Shown here: positions 6,276 to 35,036 of the stretch, piece after piece
Layout: every line of letters starts with the position of its first letter
Numbering within the stretch: the first letter of the stretch is position 1
From: Eukaryota sp. TZLM1-RC
Taxonomy: Eukaryota; Protista; Metamonada: BaSk clade
Direction: 5' to 3'
NCBI GenBank assembly: GCA_040285825.1
Contig: JAUPSS010000003.1
Span: 3,596,001-3,660,000 of the forward strand
Length of the DNA stretch: 64,000 nt
Notes under the pieces: generated by a model
The model's database searches: none
What the model saw: the letters and a program-made list of their open reading frames with translations, nothing else
What the model was told of the DNA's origin: nothing
Program-made: the position numbers and the translations under genes

Positions 6276-7057
6276 GGCCTTCATATTTGTCTTAAGTTAT
6301 AGCTTTTTACTACAGTGAATCTTTTTTTGAAATATATTTATTTATGGTAACAATGTTTTCTTTATTGATGAGTTTCGAACCAGTTGTTGTTGTTTCAATT
6401 GTAAAAAAAGCCCAATATATTTGCAGTAGAGAGAGAAAACCTTATCATATTTCTCCTGTTTCAAACCACCTGAGCATCTATTGTTGACCGGAGAGGAGAA
6501 AAGACCTCCACCTTGAGGGTCTTGGAGCAATTTGGATACTGTTTGTAATACGTGTTCATGTAAGCACCTGTGGCTGGTCTCGTTCCACCTGGACCGGCAT
6601 GGCTATCAGGGACAGGAATGGAAATGTACTGCTTAGGGGAAGGTACGGGAGGTCGTTTGAGACGTGCAGAAGAGCCTTTTTTCTTAGCGGAGGTCTTTGA
6701 ACTGCGCTCGGTACGGGGTTGAGAGCGAGGAGCAGGAGGTGTGTACATGAACTGTAACGGTTGAGGCCTCGGCGGGAGAGTAGCATAAGATGCAGTTTGT
6801 GGAGGGCCAGTAGTGAGGTCATGAAGTGAGGGAGTAATAGAAAGAAGTTAAAAGATTACAGGAAGTCTTAAAGCTCGGAAAAGAAGGTAAGTGAGGGAAA
6901 TTAGAACCTAGTTAATGAAGTGAGGGGTAAGTGTGGGAATAGTGAAAACCTCCCAAAACCAACTTGAGGGTTAAAAACCTCCCAGAACAGACAACCAGAA
7001 GTCGAAAATGGGGCGACAAGTGTAAAATTTGATAGATGAGCTCTTTATTCTTACTAC

Positions 7058-9544
7058 ATGTCAGACACCCACTCTGTGTCACGTGTATTCACTCGGTCTT
7101 GTGCACTTAACTCACTGCTGACCCCTGCAGTGGTGAGCAAATTCGGACTGACCTTCCTTTGTTCACCGAGAATTGTCATGAAGCTTTTTTACTGCTTCAA
7201 TCTTTTCTTCTAAATTTTCCGTTGGCATCTAGAGCTTTAGTGGAACAGGATGTATGGTATCTTTTTATGACCGTCATCACCACTGCTTCTTTTCCAACGC
7301 CATCCACCTCTAAAGGCCAACGCCAATTACTCCATATCTTTTACAGTGGATTTCTTCCTGAATTCCCACAAGACAGGTCTCTTGTTTCTTCATCGCAAAA
7401 ATCTTTGGTGCCTTATAGAAATTCATTCAATCTTTTTCTCAATGCTTGGCTGCCCCTTCGGTATCTCTCAATTTTTGCAGATCTTTTAACAAACTTCGAG
7501 TCAATTTTTTTTCTTTTTTATTAGAAGTAAATGAATCTTTAATTCGAAGTCATGTATTTTGTTCAGCAGATTTGGGTGGCATTGGATTCACCAAATCTTC
7601 GATTCTGTGTAAAGCAGCATTTTTGGGAGGTGGTAAAAATTTTGTTTTTGAATTTTTCCAAAGGTTCCCTTTTGATGTTCATCTGATCAATGGTGAATCA
7701 AATTTTTATTTGAATCAACTTCAAATCGAATTAGATAACTTGCCTAGTGATATCTGGATTCAGTGTTTTCCTCAAAATGTTCAAGAAATTCCCACCCGAT
7801 CACTTCCAAATTTACGTTTTTGCTTGAAAAAGCTTCAGCACCATCTGGTTAAATTATATGAAGGCTTGGATTATGAAGTAAGACTTGGCTTGGCCAAAAC
7901 TAAAAATCCCGCTTTCGGTAATTTTTTAAAAGATATTCGTGATAGTTCAGCTGCTGCTTTAGTAACTCAAGTTCCCTCTGTTTATGGACTTTTGTTAAAA
8001 GACAATGAATGGCTTCTAAACATGCGTTTTCGTTGTTTTCTGTGGCCAAACAATTTGCCCAATCATTTAACTTGTAAATGTGGTAAACCTCTTTTGTTTA
8101 CTCATCTTTTGAACTGTAAACATTTCATTACGTTTAGAAGCAAAGTGCATAATAACGTCAGGGACCAAATTTATGTAATGTGCAAATCATATCGAGTAGA
8201 TTCCTTTTTAGAACCGCTGTTATCAAAATTAATTCTCGATGATCTTAATATTGATAGTACGCGTTACAACAGAGCTTCTATGGGTCTGACTAGAGGTGAT
8301 GTAGTTGTTCCTGGTTTAAATGGTAGTTTTACTATTTTGGACGCCATGTCTATTGACCCTTGTAATTCCTCTAACGAACATTTCATTAACTCGGATGTAA
8401 ATAATCCTCTTCTTGCAGGCGAAAAATATAAAATTGCTAAATATGCGAAACCCATTTCCTCGGTTAATGAAAATTCTCATGCCCAATATAATTTATGTCC
8501 ATTTGTTTTTTCTTTGCTTGGATCTCTAGGTAAGGCTGCTATGGCTTTCCTTGAGGATTTTGTTGTAGTTGTAAAGGAAAGAACTGGAAGAATTTTCAAT
8601 CGTGTTTACTGGCAAAACAGGATTGTATTTTCTATTTTTAAGGGAATGGTAACACTAATTTCTGATTCACTATCTTCTTTTGGGAAATTTTCTGAATCTT
8701 TAGCGATTAATTGTTTTGATGTAGGGGAGGCAGGTTTTGAGGATGTGGAGTTTTAATTGTGTATTTCATATTTGTTGTTGAATAAAAATAAATAAGGTAA
8801 AAAAAATGCTTGGCTGCAGACTCAGATTTGTAATTTTATCACTAGAAAAGGGCTTTCTCCTTATTTTGCTTGTCGGGCTCGTCAATTGGCGTCTAACGTA
8901 AAGACAAGTTTACCTAAAATTTGTCAATCCTGGACAAAAAACTTCATTCGTGCTCATTGTAGAGCTCTAGATAAAACGAATGTCTGTGCCAATTATCTTA
9001 TCTCTCTTTCACCAAATGAACTCTTAGCCCAACCGGAAAAAGTAGTTGGTGATTCTGTTCTCGAACACTACATCAATTTCAATCTGACTAATTCAAGAGA
9101 AAGATTCTTTTTATTAAATGCATGTGAGTTTATCTTGAATCTCCTTCAAAGATTTCCTACCACTGCTTCTCTACTGTCTTCACATGATAAAATCACCTTT
9201 TCATCAAAGAAAATTGGTGAGCTTTTTCTCTTTAATCTTAATATTCCACAATACTTACTCACTTTCTTTTCTCATATGCATTGCTCGAAGAAATTTAGAA
9301 TAATACCTTTAGCTTCTCACAAAGGTTCTAAATTTCATGAGGTACCTTCACATGTTTTCTATTCTGTGAAAAAATTCCCACTTATTGAAGGATCATCTTC
9401 CAAATCAAAGTTCATCAAAAATACATGTCTGAAAACGAATATTCAAACAATGTGCTTACCAAAAATTTAATATCAACAGAAAAAGTTTGAAAAATAGATT
9501 TAAAAAAAATATTTATTGCAAACTAATGGTAATGAACTGCTTTT
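7058..9544 (+). pseudogene. Fanzor1-like gene copy 1 (N-terminal half), interrupted by a CRE-like insert and truncated by an LTR at 9545
   Basis: Colinear with 22981-25582 from ~6935. ATG at 7058; frameshifts near 7137 and 9433. Confidence 0.75.
7454..8804 (+). mobile_element. 5'-truncated CRE-clade non-LTR retrotransposon (thumb, Zn knuckle, RLE endonuclease) with 13-bp TSD AATGCTTGGCTGC (7441-7453 / 8805-8817)
   Basis: 'LGGIG', 'CKC..HLLNC', 'RSKVHNNVRD', 'RGDVVV..ILDA' RLE motifs; A-rich 3' tail; exact TSD. Confidence 0.88.
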
Positions 9545-11061: not shown

Positions 11062-11817
11062 TCAATAGAGGGAAGATATGGGGTTTGTTAAACTCTTTGG
11101 TGCATCGTTTGTGTGACACACATAATTTACCTCATGTTTGATTTTAGTTGGACAATCGCGGGAAATGTGTCCAGGCTTGTGGCACTTGAAGCACGATTGA
11201 TTTTTTAAATCCTGAGAGCGCCAAGAGGACCTCGTTTTAGTGCCAGCCGTACGTTCCACATCATTCACTGAGGTTTTGAAACCACGAGTCCATGAAGCAA
11301 CCCTAGAGCAGTCCAACAGCTCATCAGTAGTGGTTTCGACAAGAGAGTGAAGATGTGCGAATACATCATCTCGAATTCTCGCTAGTAGAGAACGTTGAAG
11401 ACCTACGGGAAGAATTCCTCTGGCAAATCGATTCAGAAAAGCTGTGTCTGGTAACTTCAGTCCGGAAGCCCTACTCTTTACCTGGAGGAAACGTCGCAGG
11501 TAACAGGACATACGTTCTCGGACGTCACCAATACGGACATCAAGCCTCAGTTCTGACATAGCCAGACTAAAATCTTCGTACGTGGCGAACGATACGACAG
11601 ATTGTAGATGTCTAAGAAGAACATTGTCACTGGAAGAGACGTCGGATTTCTGGAGAGATAGGGACTCTAACAGAAAAGAATCGACCAAGAGTCTTGCTGG
11701 AACAAGCTCTTTCTTAGAAGTCACAGAAGAATAGATCTTCCACTCTTGTAGGAACAAGAGAACACTTTCAACTTTCATGGAAGAAAGAGACGGGAGGTTG
11801 ACAGAAGGAACAGTCAT
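11062..11817 (-). CDS. Gag-like CCHC protein (unit 2, type A)
   Basis: Intact 251-aa ORF. Confidence 0.8.
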   Translation of the reverse strand: MTVPSVNLPSLSSMKVESVLLFLQEWKIYSSVTSKKELVPARLLVDSFLLESLSLQKSDVSSSDNVLLRHLQSVVSFATYEDFSLAMSELRLDVRIGDVRERMSCYLRRFLQVKSRASGLKLPDTAFLNRFARGILPVGLQRSLLARIRDDVFAHLHSLVETTTDELLDCSRVASWTRGFKTSVNDVERTAGTKTRSSWRSQDLKNQSCFKCHKPGHISRDCPTKIKHEVNYVCHTNDAPKSLTNPISSLY

Positions 11818-12023
11818 CTGAAATAAGAAAAGCCAATAATTATTGATGCCGTTAGGCAGATGAACACACGAAGGGGAGAGAGAAATCTGCGTTTATTAAT
11901 AAAACTGATTCATAAATGAGTATCACATCATCAGTCGAAATACAAAGAAACCTACTAATTCAATTTGAGTTCAACAACAACACTACTTTTTCCCACTTTT
12001 CTGAGGACAAATACAGTACTGTC

Positions 12024-12779
12024 TCAATAGAGGGAAGATATGGGGTTTGTTAAACTCATTGGTGCATCGTTTGTGTGACACACATAATTTACCTCATGTT
12101 TGATTTTAGTTGGACAATCGCGGGAGATGTGTCCAGGCTTGTGGCACTTGAAGCACGATTGATTTTTTAAATCCTGAGAGCGCCAAGAGGACCTCGTTTT
12201 AGTGCCAGCCGTACGTTCCACATCATTCACTGAGGTTTTGAAACCACGAGTCCATGAAGCAACCCTAGAGCAGTCCAACAGCTCATCAGTAGTGGTTTCG
12301 ACAAGAGAGTGAAGATGTGCGAATACATCATCTCGAATTCTCGCTAGTAGAGAACGCTGAAGACCTACGGGAAGAATTCCTCTGGCAAATCGATTCAGAA
12401 AAGCTGTGTCTGGTAACTTCAGTCCGGAAGCCCTACTCTTTACCTGGAGGAAACGTCGCAGGTAACAGGACATACGTTCTCGGACGTCACCAATACGGAC
12501 ATCAAGCCTCAGTTCTGACATAGCCAGACTAAAATCTTCGTACGTGGCGAACGATACGACAGATTGTAGATGTCTAAGAAGAACATCGTCACTGGAAGAG
12601 ACGTCGGATTTCTGGAGAGATAGGGACTCTAACAGAAAAGAATCGACCAACAGTCTTGCTGGAACAAGCTCTTTCTTAGAAGTCACAGAAGAATAGATCT
12701 CCCACTCTTGTAGGAACAAGAGAACACTTTCAACTTTCATGGAAGAAAGAGACGGGAGGTTGACAGAAGGAACAGTCAT
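12024..12779 (-). CDS. Gag-like CCHC protein (unit 3, type B)
   Basis: Intact 251-aa ORF with E/D/M variants. Confidence 0.8.
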   Translation of the reverse strand: MTVPSVNLPSLSSMKVESVLLFLQEWEIYSSVTSKKELVPARLLVDSFLLESLSLQKSDVSSSDDVLLRHLQSVVSFATYEDFSLAMSELRLDVRIGDVRERMSCYLRRFLQVKSRASGLKLPDTAFLNRFARGILPVGLQRSLLARIRDDVFAHLHSLVETTTDELLDCSRVASWTRGFKTSVNDVERTAGTKTRSSWRSQDLKNQSCFKCHKPGHISRDCPTKIKHEVNYVCHTNDAPMSLTNPISSLY

Positions 12780-12987
12780 CTGAAATAAGAAGGGCCAATA
12801 ATTATTGATGCCGTTAGGCAGATGAACACACGAAGGGGAGAGAGAGAAATCTGCGTTTATTAATAAAACTGATTCATAAATGAGTATCACATCATCAGTC
12901 GAAATACAAAGAAACCTACTAATTCAATTTGAGTTCAACAACAACACTACTTTTTCCCACTTTTCTGAGGACAAATACAGTACTGTC

Positions 12988-13743
12988 TCAATAGAGGGAA
13001 GATATGGGGTTTGTTAAACTCATTGGTGCATCGTTTGTGTGACACACATAATTTACCTCATGTTTGATTTTAGTTGGACAATCGCGGGAGATGTGTCCAG
13101 GCTTGTGGCACTTGAAGCACGATTGATTTTTTAAATCCTGAGAGCGCCAAGAGGACCTCGTTTTAGTGCCAGCCGTACGTTCCACATCATTCACTGAGGT
13201 TTTGAAACCACGAGTCCATGAAGCAACCCTAGAGCAGTCCAACAGCTCATCAGTAGTGGTTTCGACAAGAGAGTGAAGATGTGCGAATACATCATCTCGA
13301 ATTCTCGCTAGTAGAGAACGCTGAAGACCTACGGGAAGAATTCCTCTGGCAAATCGATTCAGAAAAGCTGTGTCTGGTAACTTCAGTCCGGAAGCCCTAC
13401 TCTTTACCTGGAGGAAACGTCGCAGGTAACAGGACATACGTTCTCGGACGTCACCAATACGGACATCAAGCCTCAATTCTGACATAGCCAGACTAAAATC
13501 TTCGTACGTGGCGAACGATACGACAGATTGTAGATGTCTAAGAAGAACATCGTCACTGGAAGAGACGTCGGATTTCTGGAGAGATAGGGACTCTAACAGA
13601 AAAGAATCGACCAAGAGTCTTGCTGGAACAAGCTGTTTCTTAGAAGTCACAGAAGAATAGATCTCCCACTCTTGTAGGAACAAGAGAACACTTTCAACTT
13701 TCATGGAAGAAAGAGACGGGAGGTTGACAGAAGGAACAGTCAT
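12988..13743 (-). CDS. Gag-like CCHC protein (unit 4, type B)
   Basis: Intact 251-aa ORF. Confidence 0.8.
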   Translation of the reverse strand: MTVPSVNLPSLSSMKVESVLLFLQEWEIYSSVTSKKQLVPARLLVDSFLLESLSLQKSDVSSSDDVLLRHLQSVVSFATYEDFSLAMSELRLDVRIGDVRERMSCYLRRFLQVKSRASGLKLPDTAFLNRFARGILPVGLQRSLLARIRDDVFAHLHSLVETTTDELLDCSRVASWTRGFKTSVNDVERTAGTKTRSSWRSQDLKNQSCFKCHKPGHISRDCPTKIKHEVNYVCHTNDAPMSLTNPISSLY

Positions 13744-13951
13744 CTGAAATAAGAAGGGCCAATAATTATTGATGCCGTTAGGCAGATGAACACACGAAGG
13801 GGAGAGAGAGAAATCTGCGTTTATTAATAAAACTGATTCATAAATGAGTATCACATCATCAGTCGAAATACAAAGAAACCTACTAATTCAATTTGAGTTC
13901 AACAACAACACTACTTTTTCCCACTTTTCTGAGGACAAATACAGTACTGTC

Positions 13952-14707
13952 TCAATAGAGGGAAGATATGGGGTTTGTTAAACTCTTTGGTGCATCGTTT
14001 GTGTGACACACATAATTTACCTCATGTTTGATTTTAGTTGGACAATCGCGGGAAATGTGTCCAGGCTTGTGGCACTTGAAGCACGATTGATTTTTTAAAT
14101 CCTGAGAGCGCCAAGAGGACCTCGTTTTAGTGCCAGCCGTACGTTCCACATCATTCACTGAAGTTTTGAAACCACGAGTCCATGAAGCAACCCTAGAGCA
14201 GTCCAACAGCTCATCAGTAGTGGTTTCGACAAGAGAGTGAAGATGTGCGAATACATCATCTCGAATTCTCGCTAGTAGAGAACGTTGAAGACCTACGGGA
14301 AGAATTCCTCTGGCAAATCGATTCAGAAAAGCTGTGTCTGGTAACTTCAGTCCGGAAGCCCTACTCTTTACCTGGAGGAAACGTCGCAGGTAACAGGACA
14401 TACGTTCTCGGACGTCACCAATACGGACATCAAGCCTCAGTTCTGACATAGCCAGACTAAAATCTTCGTACGTGGCGAACGATACGACAGATTGTAGATG
14501 TCTAAGAAGAACATTGTCACTGGAAGAGACGTCGGATTTCTGGAGAGATAGGGACTCTAACAGAAAAGAATCGACCAAGAGTCTTGCTGGAACAAGCTCT
14601 TTCTTAGAAGTCACAGAAGAATAGATCTTCCACTCTTGTAGGAACAAGAGAACACTTTCAACTTTCATGGAAGAAAGAGACGGGAGGTTGACAGAAGGAA
14701 CAGTCAT
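13952..14707 (-). CDS. Gag-like CCHC protein (unit 5, type A)
   Basis: Intact 251-aa ORF. Confidence 0.8.
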   Translation of the reverse strand: MTVPSVNLPSLSSMKVESVLLFLQEWKIYSSVTSKKELVPARLLVDSFLLESLSLQKSDVSSSDNVLLRHLQSVVSFATYEDFSLAMSELRLDVRIGDVRERMSCYLRRFLQVKSRASGLKLPDTAFLNRFARGILPVGLQRSLLARIRDDVFAHLHSLVETTTDELLDCSRVASWTRGFKTSVNDVERTAGTKTRSSWRSQDLKNQSCFKCHKPGHISRDCPTKIKHEVNYVCHTNDAPKSLTNPISSLY

Positions 14708-14913
14708 CTGAAATAAGAAAAGCCAATAATTATTGATGCCGTTAGGCAGATGAACACACGAAGGGGAGAGAGAAATCTGCGTTTATTAATAAAACTGATT
14801 CATAAATGAGTATCACATCATCAGTCGAAATACAAAGAAACCTACTAATTCAATTTGAGTTCAACAACAACACTACTTTTTCCCACTTTTCTGAGGACAA
14901 ATACAGTACTGTC

Positions 14914-15669
14914 TCAATAGAGGGAAGATATGGGGTTTGTTAAACTCATTGGTGCATCGTTTGTGTGACACACATAATTTACCTCATGTTTGATTTTAGT
15001 TGGACAATCGCGGGAGATGTGTCCAGGCTTGTGGCACTTGAAGCACGATTGATTTTTTAAATCCTGAGAGCGCCAAGAGGACCTCGTTTTAGTGCCAGCC
15101 GTACGTTCCACATCATTCACTGAGGTTTTGAAACCACGAGTCCATGAAGCAACCCTAGAGCAGTCCAACAGCTCATCAGTAGTGGTTTCGACAAGAGAGT
15201 GAAGATGTGCGAATACATCATCTCGAATTCTCGCTAGTAGAGAACGCTGAAGACCTACGGGAAGAATTCCTCTGGCAAATCGATTCAGAAAAGCTGTGTC
15301 TGGTAACTTCAGTCCGGAAGCCCTACTCTTTACCTGGAGGAAACGTCGCAGGTAACAGGACATACGTTCTCGGACGTCACCAATACGGACATCAAGCCTC
15401 AGTTCTGACATAGCCAGACTAAAATCTTCGTACGTGGCGAACGATACGACAGATTGTAGATGTCTAAGAAGAACATCGTCACTGGAAGAGACGTCGGATT
15501 TCTGGAGAGATAGGGACTCTAACAGAAAAGAATCGACCAAGAGTCTTGCTGGAACAAGCTCTTTCTTAGAAGTCACAGAAGAATAGATCTCCCACTCTTG
15601 TAGGAACAAGAGAACACTTTCAACTTTCATGGAAGAAAGAGACGGGAGGTTGACAGAAGGAACAGTCAT
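14914..15669 (-). CDS. Gag-like CCHC protein (unit 6, type B)
   Basis: Intact 251-aa ORF. Confidence 0.8.
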   Translation of the reverse strand: MTVPSVNLPSLSSMKVESVLLFLQEWEIYSSVTSKKELVPARLLVDSFLLESLSLQKSDVSSSDDVLLRHLQSVVSFATYEDFSLAMSELRLDVRIGDVRERMSCYLRRFLQVKSRASGLKLPDTAFLNRFARGILPVGLQRSLLARIRDDVFAHLHSLVETTTDELLDCSRVASWTRGFKTSVNDVERTAGTKTRSSWRSQDLKNQSCFKCHKPGHISRDCPTKIKHEVNYVCHTNDAPMSLTNPISSLY

Positions 15670-18224
15670 CTGAAATAAGAAGGGCCAATAATTATTGATG
15701 CCGTTAGGCAGATGAACACACGAAGGGGAGAGAGAGAAATCTGCGTTTATTAATAAAACTGATTCATAAATGAGTATCACATCATCAGTCGAAATACAAA
15801 GAAACCTACTAATTCAATTTGAGTTCAACAACAACAGAAGTGATCTATAATCTTAATGATTACAGATTCTTCCATATCACCGGCAGCAATGTTCTTATGC
15901 CAATCTATAATTTCTTTAGGGAAGTCAAAGAGGTATAGTTTACAACGATTAATACTTGCCGTAGACATCGAACCAGTGACGAGATTCTTGAGTAATAAAC
16001 TTTTATTGGATTTAACTTCTTCAACGAGAAAAGGGCCAGCGAAGCAACCATGGAGTTTACCATTAGTCTTTAATCACAAAACTAAGTCCCCTTTAGTAAA
16101 AGGGTTCCTATATTTGTTAACTTCAGGCAGTTGTTGAGCTTGCCTGAGCTCTGCTTCTTCTCTCTTCTTTGAAATCCTTTCAAGTTTTGCTTCAAGATCT
16201 TTAACAAAGGGAATATTAACATTAGCTGATTTTATTAGTTCAAATATATTACCAGGATAAGCTCTAAGGCTGTGGTCGCTACCAAACATCAAATTGTAGG
16301 GCGAATGACCAGTAACTCTACTAATAGTTGAATTGATTTGAAATTGTACAATTGGGATATATTCACTTCAATTGCTATAATCGCCAGAGTTCACCAAAAT
16401 CTATCTTAGACTTTGTAAAATGTCTCTGTGCCGTCTTTCTACTAAACCATTGCTTTGTGAAAAGCTAGTTAGTGAACGACTTACTTCAATGTTTAATAAA
16501 TCGCATAACCCTTTGAATATGGCATTTGCAAATTCAATACCATTGTCGCTATGAATCAACAGTGGGATACCAAAAATTGATACTACACTCTATAGGAGGT
16601 GATTGGTTGCCTCCACTGTATTCAATTCCTTTACAGGGCAAGTGATCGTATACCTAGTGAACGAATCTACAAAAACTATTAAATATTTGAATCCATTATC
16701 ATCTTGTTGTAATGGTCCAAAAGTGTCTGCATTTGATCGAGCAAAAGGTCGATCAGCCCAAAGAGAGCCAGATGATTCAATGACATTTTTAGGCACATGT
16801 GCCGTCTTTTGACATGCTGGGCATCTCTTAATATGATTAATCATGTCTTTGCGCATGTCGGGCCAAAAGTAATTACTATTGAGTAATTTCTTTACGCTAG
16901 CCGTCACACTAGGATGGCCAACATTTGCATGTCCATGAATTATAGTTAAGGTCTGCTTCTTTAAACTATCTGGGATAACACTCTTCCCACGATTGTTGGT
17001 ATACAATTGAATATCTGAATTATAATTGTAATCTTTGTAATAATTAGGATTTGAATCAACATCTATAAGTTGTTCTTGCCTAATCTTTGAGATCCAAGTG
17101 TCAAATAAATCAAATTTAGTATCCTCAACTGCTTCTTTTAAGGCAGATAAGCTATTGATTGTGGGTAGCTCAATTGTGGACGGTTGACTAATATCACCCC
17201 TTAACAAATTAACTCTAGTTAATAAATTTAAATAGGGTAATTGTTCTTCAACTCTGTGAGGTGCCAAGTTTCTCACTTGTTGGACTCGAAGGGTTTTGGG
17301 TTTGGTATCAACCAATCTAGACAACATGTCTGCCCAATAATTCTCCTCGCATGCAGTGTGGACTACATCAAAATTGAATTCTGACAATATTGGTAGCCAC
17401 CTCTTCACAATTCTGTTCTTTTCAGGAGCTGATCTAAGGTATGCTAAGTTTCTATGATCAGTGAATATAGTTAATTTCCTCGAAATTAAATAATTTTCTA
17501 AACTACTGTCACTGAGAATTAGTAAAATTGCATACAACTCTTTCTGAAGTACAGACCAATTTTTTTGTGAAGTTGATAATAATCTGCTATAGAAGGCAAT
17601 AGGTACAACCTTTCTCTTAATTAGCGGTGTCGTAGGATCCTTAGGTGGGTTAGCTTCTTGCCATATTACTCCACCTACAGCCACATCAGACGCGTCAGCA
17701 CTTATTAAAATATGCTTGTTTTCTGAGGGCAATTCAAGAGGGTTATTTGCTTTAATAAGATTTATAATCTTATCAAAAGCCCCGTCATGATCAGAAGTCC
17801 ACTTGATTTTTGACGGTTTGTTTCTGGTTAATTTGTTGATTGGTTCTATCAAATTAGACAAATTTGGCAACCAGTCAGGTATATAATTGATCAAACCTAT
17901 AAAACTCCTAACTTCAGGTAATGTCCTGGGTTTGGGTAGGTTGATCAGTCCCTCAATCTTAGATTCATCTATATAACGGGTCTTGTTTACAAAAATACTA
18001 CCTAGAATTTTTATTTCATGTCTGCAAGTGGTTAAGCTACACTTGGGTAGGCCCAGGTTAACTGGATTTATAAATGGAAAAATAATTTCACCAGAATTAA
18101 TCTATCTATATTTATTGAGCATGCACAATAAAAAATTTGATAACATAATTGCTGCTGACGTTAGCACTTTTGTTCCAGAAAGTAAACAGCAAATTAATCA
18201 CTTTTTGGCTGTTTTGCTGAAATT

Positions 18225-22918: not shown

Positions 22919-22952
22919 TTGTGATCACATGTGATCACAATCACGTGTGATT
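22919..22952. repeat. 22-bp perfect palindrome TTGTGATCACATGTGATCACAA plus adjacent TCAC/GTGA near-palindromes
   Basis: Seen directly in the sequence. Confidence 0.8.
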
Positions 22953-23099
22953 ACACTGTGAATGTGATCCACAAGTATGGTGGGAATAGTGAAAACCTCC
23001 CAAGTTGAGGGTAAAAACCCTTTTCAGAACAGGCAACCAGAAGTCGAAAATGGGGTGACAAGTGTAAAATTTGATAGATGAGCTCTTTATTCTCATTAC

Positions 23100-26000
23100 A
23101 TGTCAGACACCCACTCTGTGTCACGTGCATTCACTCGGTCTTGTGCACTTAACTCGCTACTGACCCCTGCAGCGGTGCAACAGATTCGGACTGACCTTCC
23201 TTTGGTCACCGAGATTTGTCATGAAACTTCGTTATTGCTTCAATCTTTTCTTCTAAATTTTCCGTTGGCATCTAGAGCTTTAGTGGAACAGGATGTATGG
23301 TATCTTTTTATGACCGTCATCACCACTGCTTCTTTTCCAACGCCATCCACCTCTAAAGGCCAACGCCAATTACCCCATATCTTTTACAATTGATTTCTTC
23401 CTGAATGCCCACAAGACAGGTCTTTTGTTTCTTCATCGCAAAAATCTTTGGTGCCTTATAGAAATTCATTCAATCTTTTTCTCAATGCTTGGCTGCCCCT
23501 TCGGTATCTCTCAATTTTTGCAGATCTTTTAACAAACTTCGAGTCAATTTTTTTTCTTTTTTATTAGAAGTAAATGAATCTTTAATTCGAAGTCATGTAT
23601 TTTGTTCAGCAGATTTGGGTGGCATTGGATTCACCAAATCTTCGATTCTGTGTAAAGCAGCATTTTTGGGAGGTGGTAAAAATTTTGTTTTTGAATTTTT
23701 CCAAAGGTTCCCTTTTGATGTTCATCTGATCAATGGTGAATCAAATTTTTATTTGAATCAACTTCAAATCGAATTAGATAATTTGCCTAGTGATATCTGG
23801 ATTCAGTGTTTTCCTCAAAATGTTCAAGAAATTCCCACCCGATCACTTCCAAATTTACGTTTTTGCTTGAAAAAGCTTCAGCACCATCTGGTTAAATTAT
23901 ATGAAGGCTTGGATTATGAAGTAAGACTTGGCTTGGCCAAAACTAAAAATCCCGCTTTCGGTAATTTTTTAAAAGATATTCGTGATAGTTCAGCTGCTGC
24001 TTTAGTAACTCAAGTTCCCTCTGTTTATGGACTTTTGTTAAAAGACAATGAATGGCTTCTAAACATGCGTTTTCGTTGTTTTCTGTGGCCAAACAATTTG
24101 CCCAATCATTTAACTTGTAAATGTGGTAAACCTCTTTTGTTTACTCATCTTTTGAACTGTAAACATTTCATTACGTTTAGAAGCAAAGTGCATAATAACG
24201 TCAGGGACCAAATTTATGTAATGTGCAAATCATATCGAGTAGATTCCTTTTTAGAACCGCTGTTATCAAAATTAATTCTCGATGATCCCAATATTGATAG
24301 TACGCGTTACAACAGAGCTTCTATGGGTCTGACTAGAGGTGATCTAGTTGTTCCTGGTTTAAATGGTAGTTTTACTATTTTGGACGCCATGTCTATTGAC
24401 CCTTGTAATTCCTCTAACGAACATTTCATTAACTCGGATGTAAATAATCCTCTTCTTGCAGGCGAAAAATATAAAATTGCTAAATATGCGAAAACCATTT
24501 CCTCGGTTAATGAAAATTCTCATGCCCAATATAATTTATGTCCATTTGTTTTTTCTTTGCTTGGATCTCTAGGTAAGGCTGCTATGGCTTTCCTTGAGGA
24601 TTTTGTTGTAGTTGTAAAGGAAAGAACTGGAAGAATTTTCAATCGTGTTTACTGGCAAAACAGGATTGTATTTTCTATTTTTAAGGGAATGGTAACACTA
24701 ATTTCTGATTCACTATCTTCTTTTGGGAAATTTTCTGAATCTTTAGCGATTAATTGTTTTGATGTAGGGGAGGCAGGTTTTGAGGATGTGGAGTTTTAAT
24801 TGTGTATTTCATATTTGTTGTTGAATAAAAATAAATAAGGTAAAAAAAATGCTTGGCTGCAGACTCAGATTTGTAATTTTATCACTAGAAAAGGGCTTTC
24901 TCCTTACCTTGCTTGTCGGGCTCGTCAATTGGCGTCTAACGTGAAGACAAGTTTACCTAAAATTTGTCAATCCTGGACAAAAAACTTCATTCGTGCTCAT
25001 TGTAGAGCTCTAGATAAAACGAATGTCTGTGCCAATAATCTTATCTCTCTTTTACCAAATGAACCCTTAGCCCAACCCGAAGAAGTAGTTGTTGATTCTG
25101 TTCTCGAACACTACATCAATTTCAATTTGAATAATTCAAAAGAAAGATTCTTTTTATTAAATGCATGTAAGTTTATCTTGAATCTCCTTCAAAGATATCC
25201 TACCACTGCTTCTCTCCTGTCTTCACAAGATAAAATCACCTTTTCATCAAAGGAAGTTGGTGAGCTTTTTCTCTTTAATCTTAAAATTTCACAATACTTA
25301 CTCACTTTCTGTTCTCATATGCATTGCTCGAAGAAATTTAGAATAATACCTTTAGCTTCTCACAAAGGTTCTAAATTTCATGAGGTACCTTCACATGTTT
25401 TCCACTTTGTGAAAAAATTCCCACTTTTTGAAGGATCATCTTCCAAAACAAAGTTCATCAAAAATACATGTCTGAAACGAATATTCAAACAATGTCCTTA
25501 CCAAAAATTTAAGATCAACAGAAAAAGTTTGAAAAATAGATTTAAAGAATTTTTATTGAAAACTAATGGTAATGAACTGCTTTTGACCTTTGAAGGTAAA
25601 AATAATGACTCAAAAAACACAGATGATCTGGATGAACCACCGAAAAAGAAACAAGGATTGAAAAAGGAAATGAAGAGTGACCCTGATGCCAACAAAACCA
25701 GAGAAACACAGTTCAAGGGCATTAAAAAAAGGCCCCGTCGAAAACGTAGACATACAGTCGAAATTTTACCTGAAAGGCCCCTTATTGGCGTTAATCTGGG
25801 CCAATCTAGATTATGTCGTTACTTCTTAAATGATAATCAATGTGGAGTTATCCCTTGTCCAACTGGCAGAAGAAACATGACAAAACCTTCACCCAGTAAA
25901 CACTCGCCCAACCAATATTCCGTTCAAAATTTCAACCAATATTTGAACCATTGGAATTTGGTCAGGAGGAAAGTGTATTTGGAAAATAATCGCCAGGAAT

Positions 26001-26412
26001 GGAAAATAATTAAATTCGATAACTGTAGACGAAAAGAGAGACGGTTCAGAGAGAGTCTCAACAAATTTCAAAAGCTGGCTGGACATTCTGAAAAACTCTA
26101 TCTTGCTGTGGGTTCTGCTAATTTCCCTTCTCATTGCCGAAAAGTCAATCGATATGGATCAGCAAGGGCTTTCAGAAAATGATTGTGTTATCAAAAGACG
26201 TGAAGCACTTGTCAACCAGTGAATTTAATACAAGCAAACTGTCCAGCTGTTGCAGGGCCGAGAATATTCAATCAGGCTCATGGCAAATGCGTATTTGTAC
26301 TGAGTGTCAAATAGTATATGACAGAAATATTGCAAAAGATATTCAAATTAAGAAGAAAGCGGAATTATGGCCGGAAAGATACATTTGCCCAGAAGCTCTG
26401 TTGAGGAGATGA
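23100..26412 (+). pseudogene. Fanzor1-like (TnpB-family) RNA-guided nuclease gene, ~649 aa when reconstructed (23100-23496 + 24861-26412)
   Basis: Removing the CRE insert and one TSD gives in-frame NAWLQTQICNFITRKGLSPYLACRARQLASNVK. RuvC-I LIGVNLG, 'LAVGSANF', RuvC-II SEFNTSKLSSCC, Zn finger CTEC, RuvC-III YDRNIAKDI. Lesions: TGA at 23391 and a 1-nt loss in the A-run at ~26177. Confidence 0.82.
23497..24847 (+). mobile_element. 5'-truncated CRE-clade element, TSD AATGCTTGGCTGC (23484-23496 / 24848-24860)
   Basis: Nearly identical to 7454-8804. Confidence 0.88.
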
Positions 26413-27067
26413 ATGGGGTACCTGAGCATAGAGAAACAAAAACTTTTGAAAAACTGATATTTTATTTTGAGTTGTTTATTTTTGATTAAATCCTCTTGTC
26501 ACTGGGCCTTTGGCTCAGAAGTTTAATGAATTACGTGCAAAAATTCTGTCACAATTAGTGGGATGTAAAATGTTCCAAATTCCAGACCATGCTTATCTTA
26601 GTCCACATTATGGCGGTTTAGGTTGGACGAAGGCTTCTATTCTTACCTCGTGTGCTTTTGTTGGTGGATGCAGAAATGCAATCTTTGAGTTTTCCGAAAG
26701 ATTTGCAGATTGGGAAAATTTATTGCTGACAACGCAAAGTTCCACTGTTTTTGCATTAAATGAAGAAATTTCAAAAATTGATGCAGAAAAATGGGGTCGA
26801 TGCTTTCCCCAATCATTCAATGGCAATATTCCAGAAAAGAATGTTTTAAATTTGAAGTACACTCTTCGAACATTACAAAAACGATTGACTGGAATGTATG
26901 AAAATGATCTCTATAATAATATATGCAGCTCGTGATGCTTTATCCATATATGATAACAAAGAATAAGGGTAATTTATTAGAATTTCACCGGCCCTTATAA
27001 AGGCCATCACTAGTGAACTATACTATATAAATACAAATGTACTAGACTAATTGTCCACAGTACAACA

Positions 27068-30000
27068 CTACCTTTTCCCTCTCTTAGATTCCGAACGAGA
27101 GTTACGAGAACTGACTGCGGGGGAATTAGTCTTAGATTTGGAATTAGAAGATGCCTTCCGTTTCCTGGTAGTGTGAGGACTAATAGAGCGCAAATATGTT
27201 TGATATGCCTCAGTGCTTTTGACGTCAGCAACTGGGACAGACGAAGTCTCGCCGCCATACCAAACTGCGGTACAATAAGGAACTTTATTATTGTTCGAAT
27301 CTACGTAATCAAAGTGATCTATAATTTTAACGATTACAGATTCTTCCATATCACCAGCAGCAATATTCTTATGCCAATCAAGATCTTCTTTAGGGAAGTC
27401 TGAAAGGTATAGTTTACAATGATTTATACTTGCCGTAGACATCGAACCAGTGACGAGATTCTTGAGTAATAAACTTTTATTGGATTTAACTTCTTCAACG
27501 AGAAAAGGGCCAGCGAAGCAACCATGGAGTTTACCATTAGTCTTTAATCGCAAAACTAAGTCACCTTTATTAAAAGGGTTCCTATGTTTGTTAACTTCAG
27601 GCAGTTGTTGAGCTTGCCTGAGTTCTGCCTCTTCTCTCTTCTTTGAAATCCTTTCAAGTTTTGCTTCAAGATCTTTAACAAAGGGAATATTAACATTAGC
27701 TGATTTTATTAGTTCAAACATATTACTAGGATCAGCTCTAGGGCTGTGGTCGCTACCAAACATTAAATTGTAGGGCGAATGACCAGTAACTTTACTAATA
27801 GTTGAATTGATTTGAAGTTGTACAATTGGGATATATTCGCTCCAATTGCTATAATCGCCAGAGTCTACCAAAATCTTTCTAAGACTTTGTAAAATGTCTC
27901 TGTGTCGTCTTTCTACTAAACCATTGCTTTGTGAAAAGCTAGTTAGTGAACGACTTACTTCAATGTTTAATAAATCGCATAACCCTTTGAATATGGCATT
28001 TGCAAATTCAATACCATTGTCACTATGAATCAACAGTGGGATACCAAAAATTGATACTACACTCCATAGGAGGTGATTGGTTGCCTCCACTGCATTCAAT
28101 TCCTTTACAGGGCAAATGATGGTATACCTAGTGAACGAATCTACAAAAACTATTAAATATTTGAATCCATTATCATCTTGTTGTAATGGTCCAAAATTGT
28201 CTGCATTTAATCGTGCAAAAGGTCGATCAGCCCAAAGAGAACCAGATGATTCAATAACATTTTTAGGCACATGTGCCGTCCTTTGACATGCTGGGCATCT
28301 CTTAATATGATTAATCATGTCTTTGCGCATGTCGGGCCAAAAGTAATTACTATTGAGTAATTTCTTTACGCTAGCCGTCACACTAGGATGGCCAACATTT
28401 GCATGTCCATGAATGATAGTTAAGGTCTGCTTCTCTAAACTATCTGGGATAACAATCTTCCCACGATTGTTGGTATACAATTGAATATCAGAATTATATT
28501 TGTAATCTTTGAAATAGTCAGGGTTTGAATCAACATCTATAAGTTGTTCTTGCCTAATCTTTGAGATCCAAGTGTCAAATAAATCAAATTTAGTATCCTC
28601 AACTGCTTCTTTCAAGGCAGATAAGCTATTGATCGTGGGTAGCTCAATTGTGGACGGTTGAGTGAGTAATATCATCCCTTAACAAATTAACTCTAGTTAA
28701 TAAATTTAAATAGGGTAATTGTTCTTCAACTCTGTGAGGTGCCAAGTTTCTCACTTGTTGGACTCGAGGGGTTTTGGGTTTGATATCAACCAATCTAGAC
28801 AACATGTCTGCCCAATAATTCTCCTCGCCTGCAGTGTGAACTACATCAAAATTGAATTCTGACAATATTGGTAGCCACCTTTTCACAATTCTGTTCTTTT
28901 CAGCAGCTGATATAAGGTATGCTAAGTTTCTATGATCAGTGAATATAGTTAATTTCCTCGAAATTAAATAATTCTCTAAACTACTGTCAGTGAGAATTAG
29001 TAAAATTGCATACAATTCTTTCTGAAGTACAGACCCATTCTTTTGTGAAGTTGATAATAATCTGCTAAAAAAGGCAATAGGTACAACCTTTCTCTTAATT
29101 AGCGGTGTCGTAGGATCTTTAGGTGGGTTAGCTTCTTGCCATATTACTCCACCTACAGCCACATCAGACGCGTTAGCACTTATTAAAATATGCTTGTCTT
29201 CTGAGGGCAATTCAAGAGGGATATTTGCTTTGATAAGATTTATAATCTTACCAAAAGCCTCGTCATGATCAGGAGTCCACTTGATTTTTGACGGTTTGTT
29301 TCTGGTTAATTTGTTGATTGGTTCTATCAAGTCAGACAAATTTGGCAACCAGTCACGTATATAATTGATTGAACCTATAAAACTCCTAACTTCAGGTAAT
29401 GTCCTGGGTTTGGGTAGGTTGATCAGTCCCTCGATCCTAGATTCATCTATATTACGGGTTTTGTTTACAAAAATACTACCTAGAATTTTTATTTCATGTT
29501 TGCAAGTGGTAAAGCTACACTTGGGTAGGCCCAGGTTAACTCTAAAACGTTTGGCGCGTTCTAGGACCGTACCTACTCTGGATAGAAATTCATCCAGGGT
29601 CGAAGCTACTATTATTATATCATCGATATAAATAAATACGCCCTCAGAATCAAATATTTCCATCATCATGTTTTGGAAGACTGCAGGAACGTTCTTTAAA
29701 CCAAAACAAGCCCTTTTAAAACTGATCGACATCCCGGGAATTGATACGGTAGTTTTATCAATATCCTCTTCTGCAATTTTGAGCTGCCAAAATGCCTTAT
29801 GTAAATCTAGAGTTGCTATATAATTAGCTTTACTTAGAAACTCTAAAATGTCGCTAATCCTGGGCAAATTTGCCTCTACAGGTTTAGTTAAATCATTTAC
29901 TCCACCAATACCACTAAAATCGCCAGTTAATCGTGGTTTCCTGTGATCAGGGTAAATCACAAGACAGATGGGACTACTGAATTGAGACTTTGCGGGCACA

Positions 30001-30641
30001 GCAAATCCATTACGGATCAATTCGTTAAAAATTTCCTCGGCTACCCGTTGTTTTTCTGGGTTTAATCTTCGAGGTTTCCTTTTGACGACCTTACTTTCGT
30101 CATAAAATGGAATGGTCATCGGCTGACAATCAATTCCATCCGGGTGAGGTAGCCCACTAAATACATTTCTATATTTTTCGAGTAGCACGACTAGGCGTTC
30201 CTCGTCCCTAATGTCATCCAGGCATATTCTACAGCCGAACTCATCTAACTCATGTCTAAATGTGGAATGCCCAAAATCATTACCTAAGTCTGATTTATTA
30301 CTCAATTGTTCTATGAATCTAATTGGTTGACAAATTCTATTATCGAACTCACATTCAGCATTTAAAATGGTGCGGTGTTCGCGATCCAAATTAATATTGA
30401 AACCGTGCTCCGTGCGTAGCCCCAAGGTTTGTAATAAGTCTCTTCCGATCAAAAAATTATTGGTACCAGGAATGATCTAGAATTCGATCCTTAAAAACAC
30501 TTGAGTGGCCAAGCTACCCACATTTAGAGCAAAAACACCACTTGCACATTCCAGGGTCGTGGAGCGAATACGATTTGCCGATAGGTATTCGACGGTCTTA
30601 TTGTCATCAACCGTCTTATTACATTTAGAGGCTAAATCCAT
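27068..30641 (-). pseudogene. pol: protease C-half, RT (YIDD), RNase H, integrase (HHCC, DDE, GPF, chromo-like tail)
   Basis: Canonical motifs, with a TAG at ~30478 and a 4-bp duplication frameshift at ~28660. Confidence 0.9.
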
Positions 30642-33600
30642 GATATTGCTGAAAATGCAGCTCCATTATCAATTTTGCCCTGTACTTCCGCGTTGTTTAT
30701 GGTGCAAATTAACCAGAGTTCCCCGTTAGAACTTTCTTGGTTATCTGCTACCCTGGACAGTCTAACACTGTGGATAAAACCCACAGGATTGGATGACTCT
30801 CTAAATCTTTTTAATGGATTTAGGACATTATAATTCGAATCTGCTTTGCTCATTTTATAAATGGATTTGATTGAATTATTTGTAAGGTTATTGTTAAAAG
30901 ATGTATAATCATCTGATTTATTACTACTACTTTTACGTTTTCTATCACGTCTTTCACCTCCTTGACGCTTTTTTGAACCAGGTCTTCCCACTAATTTAAA
31001 ACATTTCTCTTCAGGATGTTTATTGGTTTTGCATAAGTTACACCATTGCTCTGAAGGGATGGGTCGACTGCTTGCTCTAGTGTTCTTAAAAGGACCTTTT
31101 GACTGGCTTCGTCCTTTTTGCGCAGGAGCGTGAGCACCAAAAGCTGTTCTTATCAAATTCATGTCTTTGATCGAGGATTCAAGGCTATTGATCTTGTTAA
31201 CAAATGCGTTACCTAAATCGTAAATCGCATCGCCCAGTTTCTCGTTACTCGAATCAAACTTGCCAATCCAAATGATATATGTGTCCATCAATTGATTGTT
31301 TGTTTTGTCGTTAATAGTTTCGAGAAATCTCTTTGCTGGGTAGACGACAAACGGATTACCATCCGTTCCAGGCATAATTGTACAGCGTCGAATTATATAT
31401 ATGATCTGCTCCATGAAGGCTGTCCATGAAGATTCAGCAGTCATTTTGCGACTGATCTCAGGTGGTCTTACAGACCTTAAAGCCTTCTCAACATCGGTAG
31501 GGTAATTGTACTGGGTGCTGAGTAGCAAATATTCCCAGATTTCGGCGTCAGATGGGTTGTTGCCTAACACGTTTGTTCGGCCTCCATAAAAATTCTGCCA
31601 TTCTGCGATGACCTTACCCTCGATCATAAATCTCAAATACAAAGGGTCCACTTCGAAGAACATAGATCTAACGAAGTCGTACTGATGAACAGGTTGACCG
31701 TATTTGGTGATCGGCGTAAATGCTCTGGTGGGTCCATCGCGATCCCTAACTGTTTTAGCCCAATTGCCAAAGTTAAGAACAAAGTCGAAGATCTTCTTGG
31801 CGTCAAACGCTTCATTTAACTTAACTAGGCATCTCAGTTTGTCGTCTATTCTTTTCCTCAATTTCTCCTCGTCTGTTACAGGAGTTCTATAAAGACCGAG
31901 GGTGTCGACGAGAGAATCTCTTGGAGCATTTGTTCCTAGGGGTTGCGTGGGTATAGATGATTTTATAACAGATGCTTGTGTAGGAGTTGCTTCACAAGAA
32001 GCTCTCCTAGATGCCAGAGGCCCTACAGAAGGTGTACTAAATAGGTTCATATTCCTCTCTTCTGAAGGCAATGTTTCGCCCAACTTTATGATAAATCTTG
32101 TCTTAGGAGGTTCCTCCTGCACAGGTACAGTCTGGGCTGGTGGCCTTAAATCCACCCAATCTGGTGCATCTTTAGATCCTCTAGGGACCCCTGCTAGTTT
32201 ATGATCATATGGAAGGCAACTGCTCTTTATTAAGACATTCTCAAAAACATTTTGGTCGGGCCAGCTATCAACCCATGCCTTAAGTTTAGCCATCCATGCA
32301 TCAGGATATACTAATTTTAACTTGTTAGGGCCAACACGCTGCTCTTTCAATTCAATTACCCTAGTGCCTATTTCTCTAATGTAGGACTCTTTGGTATGAA
32401 ATTGAAGAGTGTCACCTCGAGATTCATCGAATCTGCTCCCAAGCATAATAAAAATGTCCGCAATGGAATCTTTTGGGTGTACGTTCTCCACTAGGAAATG
32501 CCTTACGACGCCTCTGAGGTTTCTACCTTGTTGATTATGAGGATACATTTTAGCTATCCAAAATAGTCTGTCGTAAGCTTCTTGATTTCCACTGAAATAT
32601 ATTTTGTGGTCATCAATTGCATCCCTATGCCATTAGGCAGGCCTGGGAGTAGCAGCTTGATACTTTGAACGAGGAGCGCTGAAATAGCAATCCTCGACTG
32701 CACTCATCCTACACGAGACTGCCGAATCGGTAAGATCATCCAATCTCTTTAAAAGATTTGGACTTTGATCATAACTCTCGTAGACGACGTCGTCAAGTGT
32801 TTTGCCGTGGGCTTCCCCAAAGAGGAAGGGCCAACGTTTCGCTAAATAGTCACGTCGGACCTTCTCACATTCGGCTGAGTCTACGTCTCCCGCAAGACGT
32901 TCTGACTCATTCTCAGCCATTTTTAATAATTCGTCAGCACTCCAATCCATTACATCTTCGGGAGGATTGGCGATGAGGTCCAATAAGAAATCTCTAGTTA
33001 CAGCCTCAACTGCCTTTGCTAATTTCCTTCGGTAAAGACCATGAGAAGTCTTTTCCGTAGATGGGAAACTAGGAGTTGGATTAGGAGGATTGGGTGTATG
33101 AGGTGGTTCATCATCGCTCTCATCCCCTCTCCTGCTGTAGTTCTGATTAAGAGATCCTCTGGAATCACTTTGAGGTTCCTCACTTGAGCTGATGTCAGTA
33201 GGTGAGGAGGGAGTTTTACGTGAGGAGCTAGTCGTAGACTGTTGCTCGCCTTCGCCTCCTTCACCCTCTGTACAAGCGTCAGATTTATTACTTACAACAA
33301 ACGCTTTGAATCTTCGTTGCTCGCTCGGGGTGAGAAAACTCTTCCTACAAGGAAGGAGCTCCGAGGAGTTATTGGGATATGTGTACAGTTCTGTCACATC
33401 CACATCGTGATTACCTCTCTCCTTATTAGGGAGGTGACTTCCTTTCTGGGAGGAAGGGCTCTCCTCAGTGTGAAGTTCACTCTCCTTATTGGGGAGGTGG
33501 CTTTCTTTCTGAAAGGCAAGGCTCTTCTCAGCGGAAAGCTCACTCTCCTTAGGAGGATTACTCTTCCCGAAGGAAGGATTACTCTCCGTAGGTGGAGGAT

Positions 33601-33718
33601 TACTCACCGTGGGTGGTGGATTGTTCTCCTTCAAAGAAGGGACATTACTCTTCCTCAGAGAGGAAGGAGGGTTATCATTGTGGCTTTTCAGGCCATTAAT
33701 TAATGATGCTTTATCCAT
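30632..33718 (-). pseudogene. Very long gag (S/P/E-rich N-terminus, capsid-like core, CNLC..H....C knuckle) and protease N-half; single in-frame TAA at 32633-32635
   Basis: ORFs 32633-33781 and 30632-32548 share one frame, with 28 open codons between the TAA and the next ATG. Confidence 0.75.
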
Positions 33719-34787
33719 ATATGATAACAAAGAATAAGGGTAATTTATTAGAATTTCACCGGCCCTTATAAAGGCCATCACTAGTGAACTATACTATATA
33801 AATACAAATGTACTAGACTAATTGTCCACAGTACAACACTCGGCTGTTTTAAATCAAGATCTTCACTCACTGTTATTGGAAAAGGGTGTTTGTGAAAACA
33901 AGTCATCAGATTCTTCACTTTTTGTAACCATTGTACCACGAAGATTTGGATTGTGTGCCACTAATGAAGCATTTGTAACAAAAATGAGCTCATATTTGAA
34001 CATCCCCATTAATCAATTTTTATCAAAAGAAAAATGTATTTGTTCGAATTCACCTCAACTCACTTTGCGCCATGCTCTGAATTGCTCTAAATTGATAACT
34101 TATTGTTCTTCATTACATGATGCTGTTGGAGACACTGTTTTTAATATGGCACAAACTGCAAGAATATCGTGTATCAAAGAGCCTCTGCTGAAGGAAACAC
34201 TTTCTCTGAATAATTTTGGTTCTGATGATAGAGGTGATGTATACTGTGATTGGATTGATAATTCTGAAGCTATTGTTGACTTTGTTTCATGTAATGTTGC
34301 AAATGATACTTTGGTTCACAGAAGAAAACTTAATCCTGTGAGTGCTCTTGATTTTAAAGCAAAAGAAAAACATAGAAAATATGACAAAGATATTGAAGAG
34401 GCTAATGCTGATAGAAATACACAGCTGGTTTTTATTGCTTTCCCATTTTCGATAAATGGAAGATTATCAGATGAAGCAGAAACTTTTTTGAATGACTTCC
34501 AAAAAATGGTTCAAGAAAAAACAATGAAAAGATTTGATATTTTTTTATGGCGTTCACGGATTCAATTTGCCATTATTAATAGATTACCTTGGTTTTTCAA
34601 TCGAATAAGAGAAGCTTTAGCTAGACAGCAAGCAGATCAAGATTTTGTAGAGGAAATCTTGGTTCAATGATAGTCGTCCCATTAGTTATGAGTTAATTTA
34701 ATTAAGTGTGCAAATTCAATAAATATTTTTGTATTATTTTTGATTATTTTTTTGAAAAACTTTTGAGACCGATCTACAAATACCTTA

Positions 34788-35036
34788 GTAGCATTTGGTA
34801 GGTCCACTTAGATACATCAAGTCGCGAGGCTTTGTTCTGTGAAAGCAGTAGGTGTATTTAAGTGAGGTAGCCCATTGATGAAGATCATGATTGTCTTTGT
34901 CAAATGATGCTACATGTCTCTTACAGCCTGTGAGTAGACATTGAGAAAGTTGAAAACAGGAGTGAATTTTACAGGGGAATGTATGATAAGTAAAAATCTC
35001 AGTTACTCCCAAACTTTGAGTTGCAAACCCAACTCA
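34788..35036 (+). ncRNA. Structured non-coding segment; candidate Fanzor omega-RNA scaffold
   Basis: 14-bp stem 34805-34818/34851-34864 with two G-U pairs, enclosing GCGA (34819-34832) and GAAA (34837-34848) tetraloop hairpins. Outer stem 34788-34802/34896-34913. Hairpins at 34914-34941, 34959-35009 and 35017-35036. Confidence 0.6.

Follow-up and report, generated by a model that had tools for sequence, protein, structure and literature searches.

The stretch of DNA considered here (the window) comprises 64,000 nucleotides of contig JAUPSS010000003.1 (positions 3,596,001 to 3,660,000, forward strand) from assembly GCA_040285825.1 of Eukaryota sp. TZLM1-RC, a skoliomonad, and contains at 22980-26449 and 34756-34998 the pieces of a broken gene together with its leader and its displaced 3' region. 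These pieces very probably represent a dead copy, in a short form of about 2.4 kb, of a DNA transposon whose product is a 651-aa Fanzor1-like nuclease derived from TnpB. The open reading frame (ORF) starting at 23100 consists of 97 codons and is closed by TGA at 23391-23393, beyond which the frame is open until 23496. There the 13-bp target duplication AATGCTTGGCTGC is found in two copies (23484-23496 and 24848-24860), separated by an insert of 1,351 bp with a run of eight A at its end. Because the 436-aa ORF of this insert resembles, with 50% identity, the ORF at 43561-44253 that lies, within 42787-44253, just downstream of an ORF with the reverse-transcriptase domain RVT_1, the insert at 23497-24847 was recognised as the 3' part of a non-LTR (long terminal repeat) retrotransposon. 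Further downstream, the repeat AAAAACTTTTGA is present at both junctions of a nested insertion of 8.3 kb. Coordinates of these features are collected in Table 1.

Table 1. Pieces of the Fanzor element in the window, its insertions and the second copy (UTR, untranslated region).
Feature	Position	Strand	Remarks
Candidate left-terminal-repeat remnant (TACACTGTGAAT...), abutting internal leader sequence	22952..22979	+	Low confidence
Leader / 5' UTR common to family copies	22980..23099	+	92% identity to L004 upstream of ATG
Fanzor coding piece 1, codons 1-132	23100..23496	+	In-frame TGA 23391-23393 (Gly98 in intact copies)
Non-LTR retrotransposon 3' fragment	23497..24847	+	ORF 23489-24799, A8 tail, 13-bp target duplication
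Fanzor coding piece 2, codons 133-651	24861..26412	+	Multiple lesions compared with intact copies
Initial 37 nt of 3' UTR	26413..26449	+	Homology to other copies ends at 26449
Nested insertion, 8.3 kb	26450..34755		Non-LTR fragment (26450-26932 + 33839-34755) enclosing Ty3-like LTR retrotransposon
Displaced right end: omegaRNA-like scaffold	34756..34998	+	96% identity to intact copies; terminal hairpin damaged
Copy 1 of the element	6906..9544 (6906-7453 + 8805-9544)	+	Same insert at same base; LTR element truncates at 9544

An intact counterpart of the gene exists in the same genome, namely the protein P0022 (KAL0223451.1), 651 aa in length and encoded by one uninterrupted ORF (L004:8001-9956). 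Each piece from the window was searched separately, and the natural P0022 served as the full-length stand-in. Four pieces tile collinearly on P0022 with 82-93% identity, and the 444-aa piece (24848-26179) matches only proteins of TZLM1-RC (84-89% identity) and of GEM-RC1 (51%), the intact members in the latter having 648 and 646 aa. The family is multicopy: the 90%-identity cluster that includes P0022 has 82 members in TZLM1-RC, and 11 cluster members are known from GEM-RC1. An exhaustive profile search through 1.84 billion representatives (E<=0.001) gave 33 proteins, nearly all from three skoliomonad assemblies; among them are three families of 539-605 aa that stand further apart (P0062, P0064 and P0065) and some metagenomic proteins; a search started from the outside relative P0066 added one further protein only. 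Repeated copies with defined ends are situated on Mb-scale contigs of the three assemblies, and the family, as judged by the sequences searched, occurs only in skoliomonads.

The zinc ribbon of TnpB (PF07282) was recognised in the intact members P0022, P0035, P0001, P0002 and P0042 with 27.6-28.8 bits, above the Pfam gathering cut-off of 26.3, and it was the only Pfam match of the window pieces, where the fragment alone reaches 17.5 bits and remains below the cut-off. Single-sequence searches of PDB with these pieces gave nothing or one weak match to Cas12m. Using the family profile, it was shown that the best relative in PDB is SpuFz1 (8gkh, E 1.6e-9), aligned over profile positions 239-589 (~350 positions); in the same search, sequence matches to TnpB, Fanzor2, Cas12f, Cas12m and TranC were confined to the last 50-80 residues. 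Residues D444, E587 and D622 of P0022 align with D777, E935 and D1000 of the 8gkh chain, which, with the tag offset of 394 taken into account, are D383, E541 and D606 of SpuFz1, the residues that coordinate two magnesium ions (Saito et al., PMC10432273).

Residues D444, G550, E587, C597, C612, C615, R621 and D622 are invariant in four families of skoliomonads and in two relatives from outside; the alignment of the family with its relatives also leaves T590, S591, A625 and N628 unchanged. The Fanzor/TnpB motif proposed by Bao and Jurka (PMC3627910) consists of D-X(125,275)-[TS][TS], a C4 zinc finger two residues on and RD 5-50 residues later. In the family, 146 residues lie from D444 to T590/S591, and R621-D622 is found seven residues past C615; the window copy has Asn444 and reads RN in place of RD. 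In the zinc finger, the first Cys position, followed by the three invariant cysteines, is occupied by Ser, Asn, Tyr or Gly, and Cys596 adjoins C597, the first knuckle (P0022 594-597) having the form x-x-C-C in every skoliomonad family examined and C-x-x-C in the outside relatives P0066 and P0068. The additional Gly and Glu typical of Fanzor1 (G500/E536 of SPu-1-1p, PMC3627910), the latter described as a relocated RuvC-II glutamate by Jiang et al. (PMC10530073) and Yoon et al., have their counterparts in G550 and E587, situated 37 residues apart. One more outside relative, P0113, has its best match in the Fanzor1 of Guillardia.

The AlphaFold2 (AF2) model of residues 285-651, calculated from a 16-sequence alignment, has a core (RuvC and zinc ribbon) with pLDDT 75-94. 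The top 49 structures found by Foldseek with this C-terminal model are all Cas12f or other Cas12, TnpB, TranC, Fanzor1 or Fanzor2 (best E 4e-5), and VIA-align placed model residues 145-367 on PpFz, SpuFz, Cas12 variants, ApmFz2 and ISDra2 TnpB with Z of 11-13. The RuvC fold with an inserted zinc ribbon, i.e. the fold of the TnpB/Cas12 superfamily, is therefore present in the family. With SpuFz1 as the best solved relative, PF07282 above its gathering score and fold matches of the Cas12f, TnpB and Fanzor kind only, the identity put forward in an earlier note on this DNA, a Fanzor1-like RNA-guided nuclease, is borne out, the RNA-guidance being assigned by analogy. The suggestion in that note that the family is possibly undescribed holds as far as the literature was searched: no paper combining Fanzor with Skoliomonas was found, metamonads are unmentioned in the main texts of the Fanzor surveys searched (including PMC10530073 and PMC3627910), and the intact copies have been deposited under the name 'hypothetical protein'.

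Copies of the element in TZLM1-RC share about 2.38 kb of sequence, which begins 150 bp before the ATG and breaks off sharply on the right. The right terminus consists of GAAATTCACAG followed by TA and is sharp in six out of six good copies from two species, with complete divergence beyond it. Within ~240 nt before this end, conservation between TZLM1-RC and GEM-RC1 exceeds that of the coding sequence, the proteins being 58% identical. This region folds much better than shuffled sequences do (z of -5.0 and -5.6), and the common structure includes five stems with 69 pairs. Of the pair cells in the consensus, 99.2% are paired, compared with 35-42% in controls with slid partners, and five pairs show two-sided changes. 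Particularly, in the last hairpin, GUGAAUUUCA...UGAAAUUCAC, the stem is kept, and the length and sequence of the loop vary between copies. The 3' region has the features expected of an omegaRNA scaffold whose guide comes from the flank and is considered here a candidate for it; such an RNA would start near GAGACCGATCT and extend past GAAATTCACAG-TA. The Rfam scan of the window matched no family. In the decayed hairpin of the window copy (34952-34998), one pair is kept by a two-sided change (C-G to U-A), beside changes that break pairs.

In GEM-RC1, three loci share 3.43 kb between perfect 13-bp inverted repeats TACTGTGAATTTC, and TA is found on both flanks of one of them (L005). Three TZLM1-RC loci contain an additional shared left module of 1.0-1.4 kb (L008:1190-2565, L001:4843-5849 and L004:6740-7851), which begins with TATTAC(T/A)GTGGTTGAATTT, a putative left terminal repeat and an imperfect version of that of GEM-RC1, and includes an opposite-strand ORF with the MJ1316 domain (RNA cyclic-end recognition, PF04457). 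The corresponding region of GEM-RC1 is an unrelated 1.2 kb without any ORF above ~100 codons, and L004 has lost ~150 bp at an ATAC microhomology. Short forms without the left module are represented by the window copies and L002. Comparison of 22952-22979 in the window with the reverse complement of the right-end hairpin gave a score of 26 (shuffles: mean 13.9, maximum 28). Element copies encode no transposase, and they may be mobilised in trans by a TA-targeting transposase, as the analogous Mariner-type elements with Fanzor1 alone that Bao and Jurka described would suggest; a Tc1/mariner-type enzyme acting on ends that begin with CTGTGAATTTC would be the candidate mobiliser. Docking of the right end on host start codons was considered and rejected. 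In fact, the next same-strand start codon is ~60-140 nt away in the window, L007 and L008 and ~630 nt away in L002, and in L001 and L004 the gene that follows has the opposite orientation.

The intact protein consists of a helical N-terminal half, a basic linker resembling a nuclear localization signal and a split RuvC domain with the inserted zinc ribbon, where D444 belongs to RuvC-I (GVDLG), E587 is the RuvC-II glutamate relocated to EFNTSK and D622 belongs to RuvC-III (RD). A transcript reading past the right terminus into the flank would carry a guide specific to each copy, and the complex of protein and RNA would cut guide-matching DNA beside a short motif, by analogy with SpuFz1 and TnpB.

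Among the known systems, SpuFz1 of Spizellomyces punctatus (PDB 8GKH, 9CEU-9CEZ) is similar to the family in its size (~640 aa vs 651 aa), in a profile alignment that spans the region from WED to the C-terminus, in the three metal-binding residues, including the relocated RuvC-II glutamate beside the zinc ribbon, in the Gly-containing strand at the canonical RuvC-II position, in the location of the guide-RNA scaffold (here a candidate one) at the right end, past the gene, and in the lack of an encoded transposase. In contrast, the identity is only ~12-15%, RuvC-I contains DPN in SpuFz1 and DLG in the family, the first knuckle of the family is S-x-C-C, and the terminal repeats are 30 nt in SpuFz1 and 13 bp in GEM-RC1. 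The Fanzor1-only Mariner-type elements (e.g. PUl-4; Bao and Jurka 2013, PMC3627910) also carry a lone Fanzor1-type gene, short terminal inverted repeats and flanking TA, the latter being clear in L005; TA follows all six sharp right ends of the family. They differ from it in that the left repeat of TZLM1-RC is imperfect and most TZLM1-RC copies are 5'-deleted short forms; no matching Mariner transposase turned up, and none was searched for. ISDra2 TnpB and Cas12f share with the family the RuvC and zinc-ribbon fold (Z 11-12) and the origin of the guide RNA (in the family a candidate one) at the right end of the element, but they have ~400 aa, the canonical RuvC-II glutamate and the prokaryotic IS200/605 context with TnpA. 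The Mimivirus Fanzor2 (ApmFz2, PDB 9B0L) agrees with the family in its relocated glutamate and in the fold of the C-terminal part (Z 11.7), but it is shorter, IS607-linked and viral, and the sequence profile of the family does not detect it.

The window copy itself is dead and cannot work. Compared with intact copies, it contains 135 substitutions over ~1,950 aligned bases (76 transitions and 59 transversions), 81 differences being non-synonymous and many of these affecting positions invariant in the family. Tryptophan codon 573 was changed from TGG to a TGA stop (W573*, 26180-26182), one base was deleted near 26197 (codon 578) with a shift of the frame, and six nucleotides were deleted near 26331 (codons 623-625). 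Substitutions D444N (25793-25795) and D622N (26326-26328) altered the catalytic residues, and N628D is also present. Neither an open frame nor an intact catalytic triad is retained. Two stops and a frameshift, the replacement of two of the three catalytic residues by Asn, the retrotransposon in the gene and the 8.3 kb of nested retroelements before the scaffold make the copy nonfunctional. Deamination-like bias as a source of both D-to-N changes was rejected, the spectrum being symmetric (G>A 20, C>T 22, A>G 15, T>C 19). The ratio of non-synonymous to synonymous differences (pN/pS) is 0.40 between the window copy and the intact one, 0.25-0.33 among good copies and 0.32 between the two species; therefore, the lineage evolved under constraint, and the window copy decayed afterwards.

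The earlier note had rebuilt this gene from three ORF fragments, and the outline of that reconstruction stands. With the insert and one copy of its 13-bp duplication removed, the ORF from 23100 comes in frame with that from 24929, as was claimed, and the BLAST alignments to the intact copy overlap by exactly 13 nt. The length proposed for the protein, ~649 aa, is close to the 651 aa of P0022, with which the pieces are collinear, and intact genomic copies show the two halves to be contiguous, so that the absence of contiguity elsewhere, named in the note as a ground for refutation, did not materialise. All the motifs reported are present in the order given: IGVNLG (25784-25801), AVGSANF (26105-26125), SEFNTSK (26218-26238), SSCC (26242-26253), CTEC (26296-26307) and DRN (within 26317-26343). 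The repair of the C-terminal part proved to be wrong. The single A to be restored at ~26177 does not correspond to the true lesions, which are the stop W573* and the one-base deletion near 26197; intact copies read ...FRKW LCYQK DVKH... across this place, and the proposed join would swap six real residues (WLCYQK) for out-of-frame ones. The 6-nt deletion near 26331 was absent from the note. Copy 1 does have GGA where copy 2, that of 23100-26412, has TGA (23391-23393) and, as was stated, differs further by its own indels; the consensus to be rebuilt from both copies is unnecessary, since natural intact copies exist.

Several points weigh against interpreting the family as Fanzor1-like guided nucleases. 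The Z values are tied, and the fold does not separate Fanzor from Cas12f or TnpB; therefore, it gives the superfamily only, and it is the sequence profile that supports the designation 'Fanzor1-like'. In the first zinc knuckle, S-x-C-C replaces C-x-x-C, the full-length AF2 model of P0022 (6-sequence alignment) has pLDDT 31.6 and is unusable, and the REC-like nature of the N-terminal half is putative. Covariation in the RNA covers two lineages only, and RNA binding, guide use and cleavage are activities that we infer by analogy. These points are to be set beside what has been established, i.e. homology, fold, the alignment of catalytic residues, the ends of the element and the conservation and structure of the RNA region. 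It is rather unlikely, in our opinion, that the family goes back to a eukaryotic radiation of TnpB independent of the Fanzor1 clade proper and resembles Fanzor1 only in size and layout. Multiple eukaryotic radiations of TnpB homologues have been reported (Jiang et al., PMC10530073), the 33 profile matches are few and nearly all skoliomonad, RuvC-I has DLG vs DPG/DPN of SpuFz1 and other skoliomonad families, and the unusual first knuckle would also fit this explanation. However, no solved structure matches the sequence better or over a greater length than SpuFz1, a Fanzor1, P0113 has its best match in the Guillardia Fanzor1, and both additional residues characteristic of Fanzor1 (Gly and Glu) are invariant.

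A Fanzor2 or a TnpB of IS607 type, as well as bacterial contamination, is very improbable as a source of these genes. The PF07282 zinc ribbon and the RuvC fold are indeed common to TnpB, Cas12f and Fanzor2, but the copies lie amid eukaryotic genes on eukaryotic contigs of Mb scale and are broken by LTR and non-LTR retrotransposons, the N-terminal half of the 651-aa protein is long and helical, no serine recombinase is found nearby, and the sequence matches to TnpB and Fanzor2 are limited to the last 50-80 residues. The joint occurrence of D444N and D622N in the window copy may call to mind a nuclease-dead, RNA-guided DNA-binding derivative, i.e. a regulator similar to TldR, rather than simple decay. 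This seems extremely improbable for a copy with two stops, a frameshift, the 6-nt deletion, N628D, a retrotransposon within the ORF, a displaced scaffold, numerous non-synonymous differences at invariant positions and an unbiased substitution spectrum; besides, D444 and D622 are kept by all the other copies examined. A chance in-frame join of three unrelated ORF fragments has nothing in its favour except the general possibility that short ORFs meet in frame, and it has been refuted by the collinearity of the fragments with intact natural proteins of three genomes.

A different arrangement was observed in TZLM3-RCL (GCA_040285805.1), where the Fanzor part of the counterpart KAL0209630.1 is 31% identical to P0022 (E 1e-85). 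An uninterrupted ORF of 1,323 codons (L009:2501-6472) encodes, in this order, a leader, an EXO1-type nuclease and Fanzor, and a second locus (L006:878-4980) has the identical layout with one frameshift. Domains XPG_N and XPG_I are both above the Pfam cut-offs, residues 99-380 of the fusion match human EXO1 1-289 (E 4.6e-39), and all seven acidic active-site positions, in the numbering of human EXO1, are retained. The leader ends in the 2A-like DVEPNPG, without the usual final Pro, and the native nuclease N-terminus MGIKNLL follows directly. After the Fanzor stop, the two loci (L006:4981-5065 and L009:6473-6579) share only ~45 nt, and a host gene on the same strand begins 85-107 nt past this stop at both of them; therefore, the right end and any guide RNA of TZLM3-RCL must be organised differently from those of TZLM1-RC and GEM-RC1. 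No EXO1 remnant was found in the 5' regions of the TZLM1-RC and GEM-RC1 elements or in the window. In the parts of the literature covered by the search, no paper pairs Fanzor with XPG, and Fanzor and EXO1 appear together only in broad reviews. It may be supposed, with considerable doubt, that the family is a live RNA-guided nuclease system specific to skoliomonads and naturally coupled to DNA-end resection in the TZLM3-RCL branch.

Some observations concern the retroelements around the Fanzor copies. The retrotransposon inserts of copies 1 and 2 (7454-8804 and 23497-24847) are ~99.6% identical, with 5 differences in ~1,350 nt, while the Fanzor sequences flanking them are only ~94% identical; both inserts occupy the identical base and have the identical 5' end. 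Such a pattern points either to a defined short element that inserted more than once at one specific site or to gene conversion. Close behind the LTR element by which copy 1 is truncated, there is a tandem array (9916-15836) of 6-7 units, 962-964 bp in length; every unit contains an ORF of 251-288 codons on the minus strand, and in one 288-codon ORF that was scanned, a CCHC zinc knuckle (gag-like) was found. The non-LTR fragment family of 26450-26932/33839-34755 is also present in L004:10222-11560, that is, in the 3' regions of two Fanzor copies. The positions differ and the orientations are opposite: the 3' UTR is interrupted in the window, and the terminal hairpin is cut at GAAATTCA in L004.

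Summarizing the significance of these data, it may be concluded that the window copy is transposon debris of little importance alone, and that the family to which it belongs extends the Fanzor1-like nucleases by a divergent lineage from a free-living metamonad. Natural intact genes in two species, together with a well-defined candidate RNA scaffold of 240 nt, would allow guided cleavage to be tested without any reconstruction. If the fusion from TZLM3-RCL acts as one enzyme, resection would immediately follow a guided break and direct it to homologous recombination, the kind of repair by which an emptied site regains a copy of the element. The unusual zinc knuckle and the EXO1-Fanzor fusion may be regarded as natural experiments on the ties of transposon RNA-guided nucleases to DNA repair.

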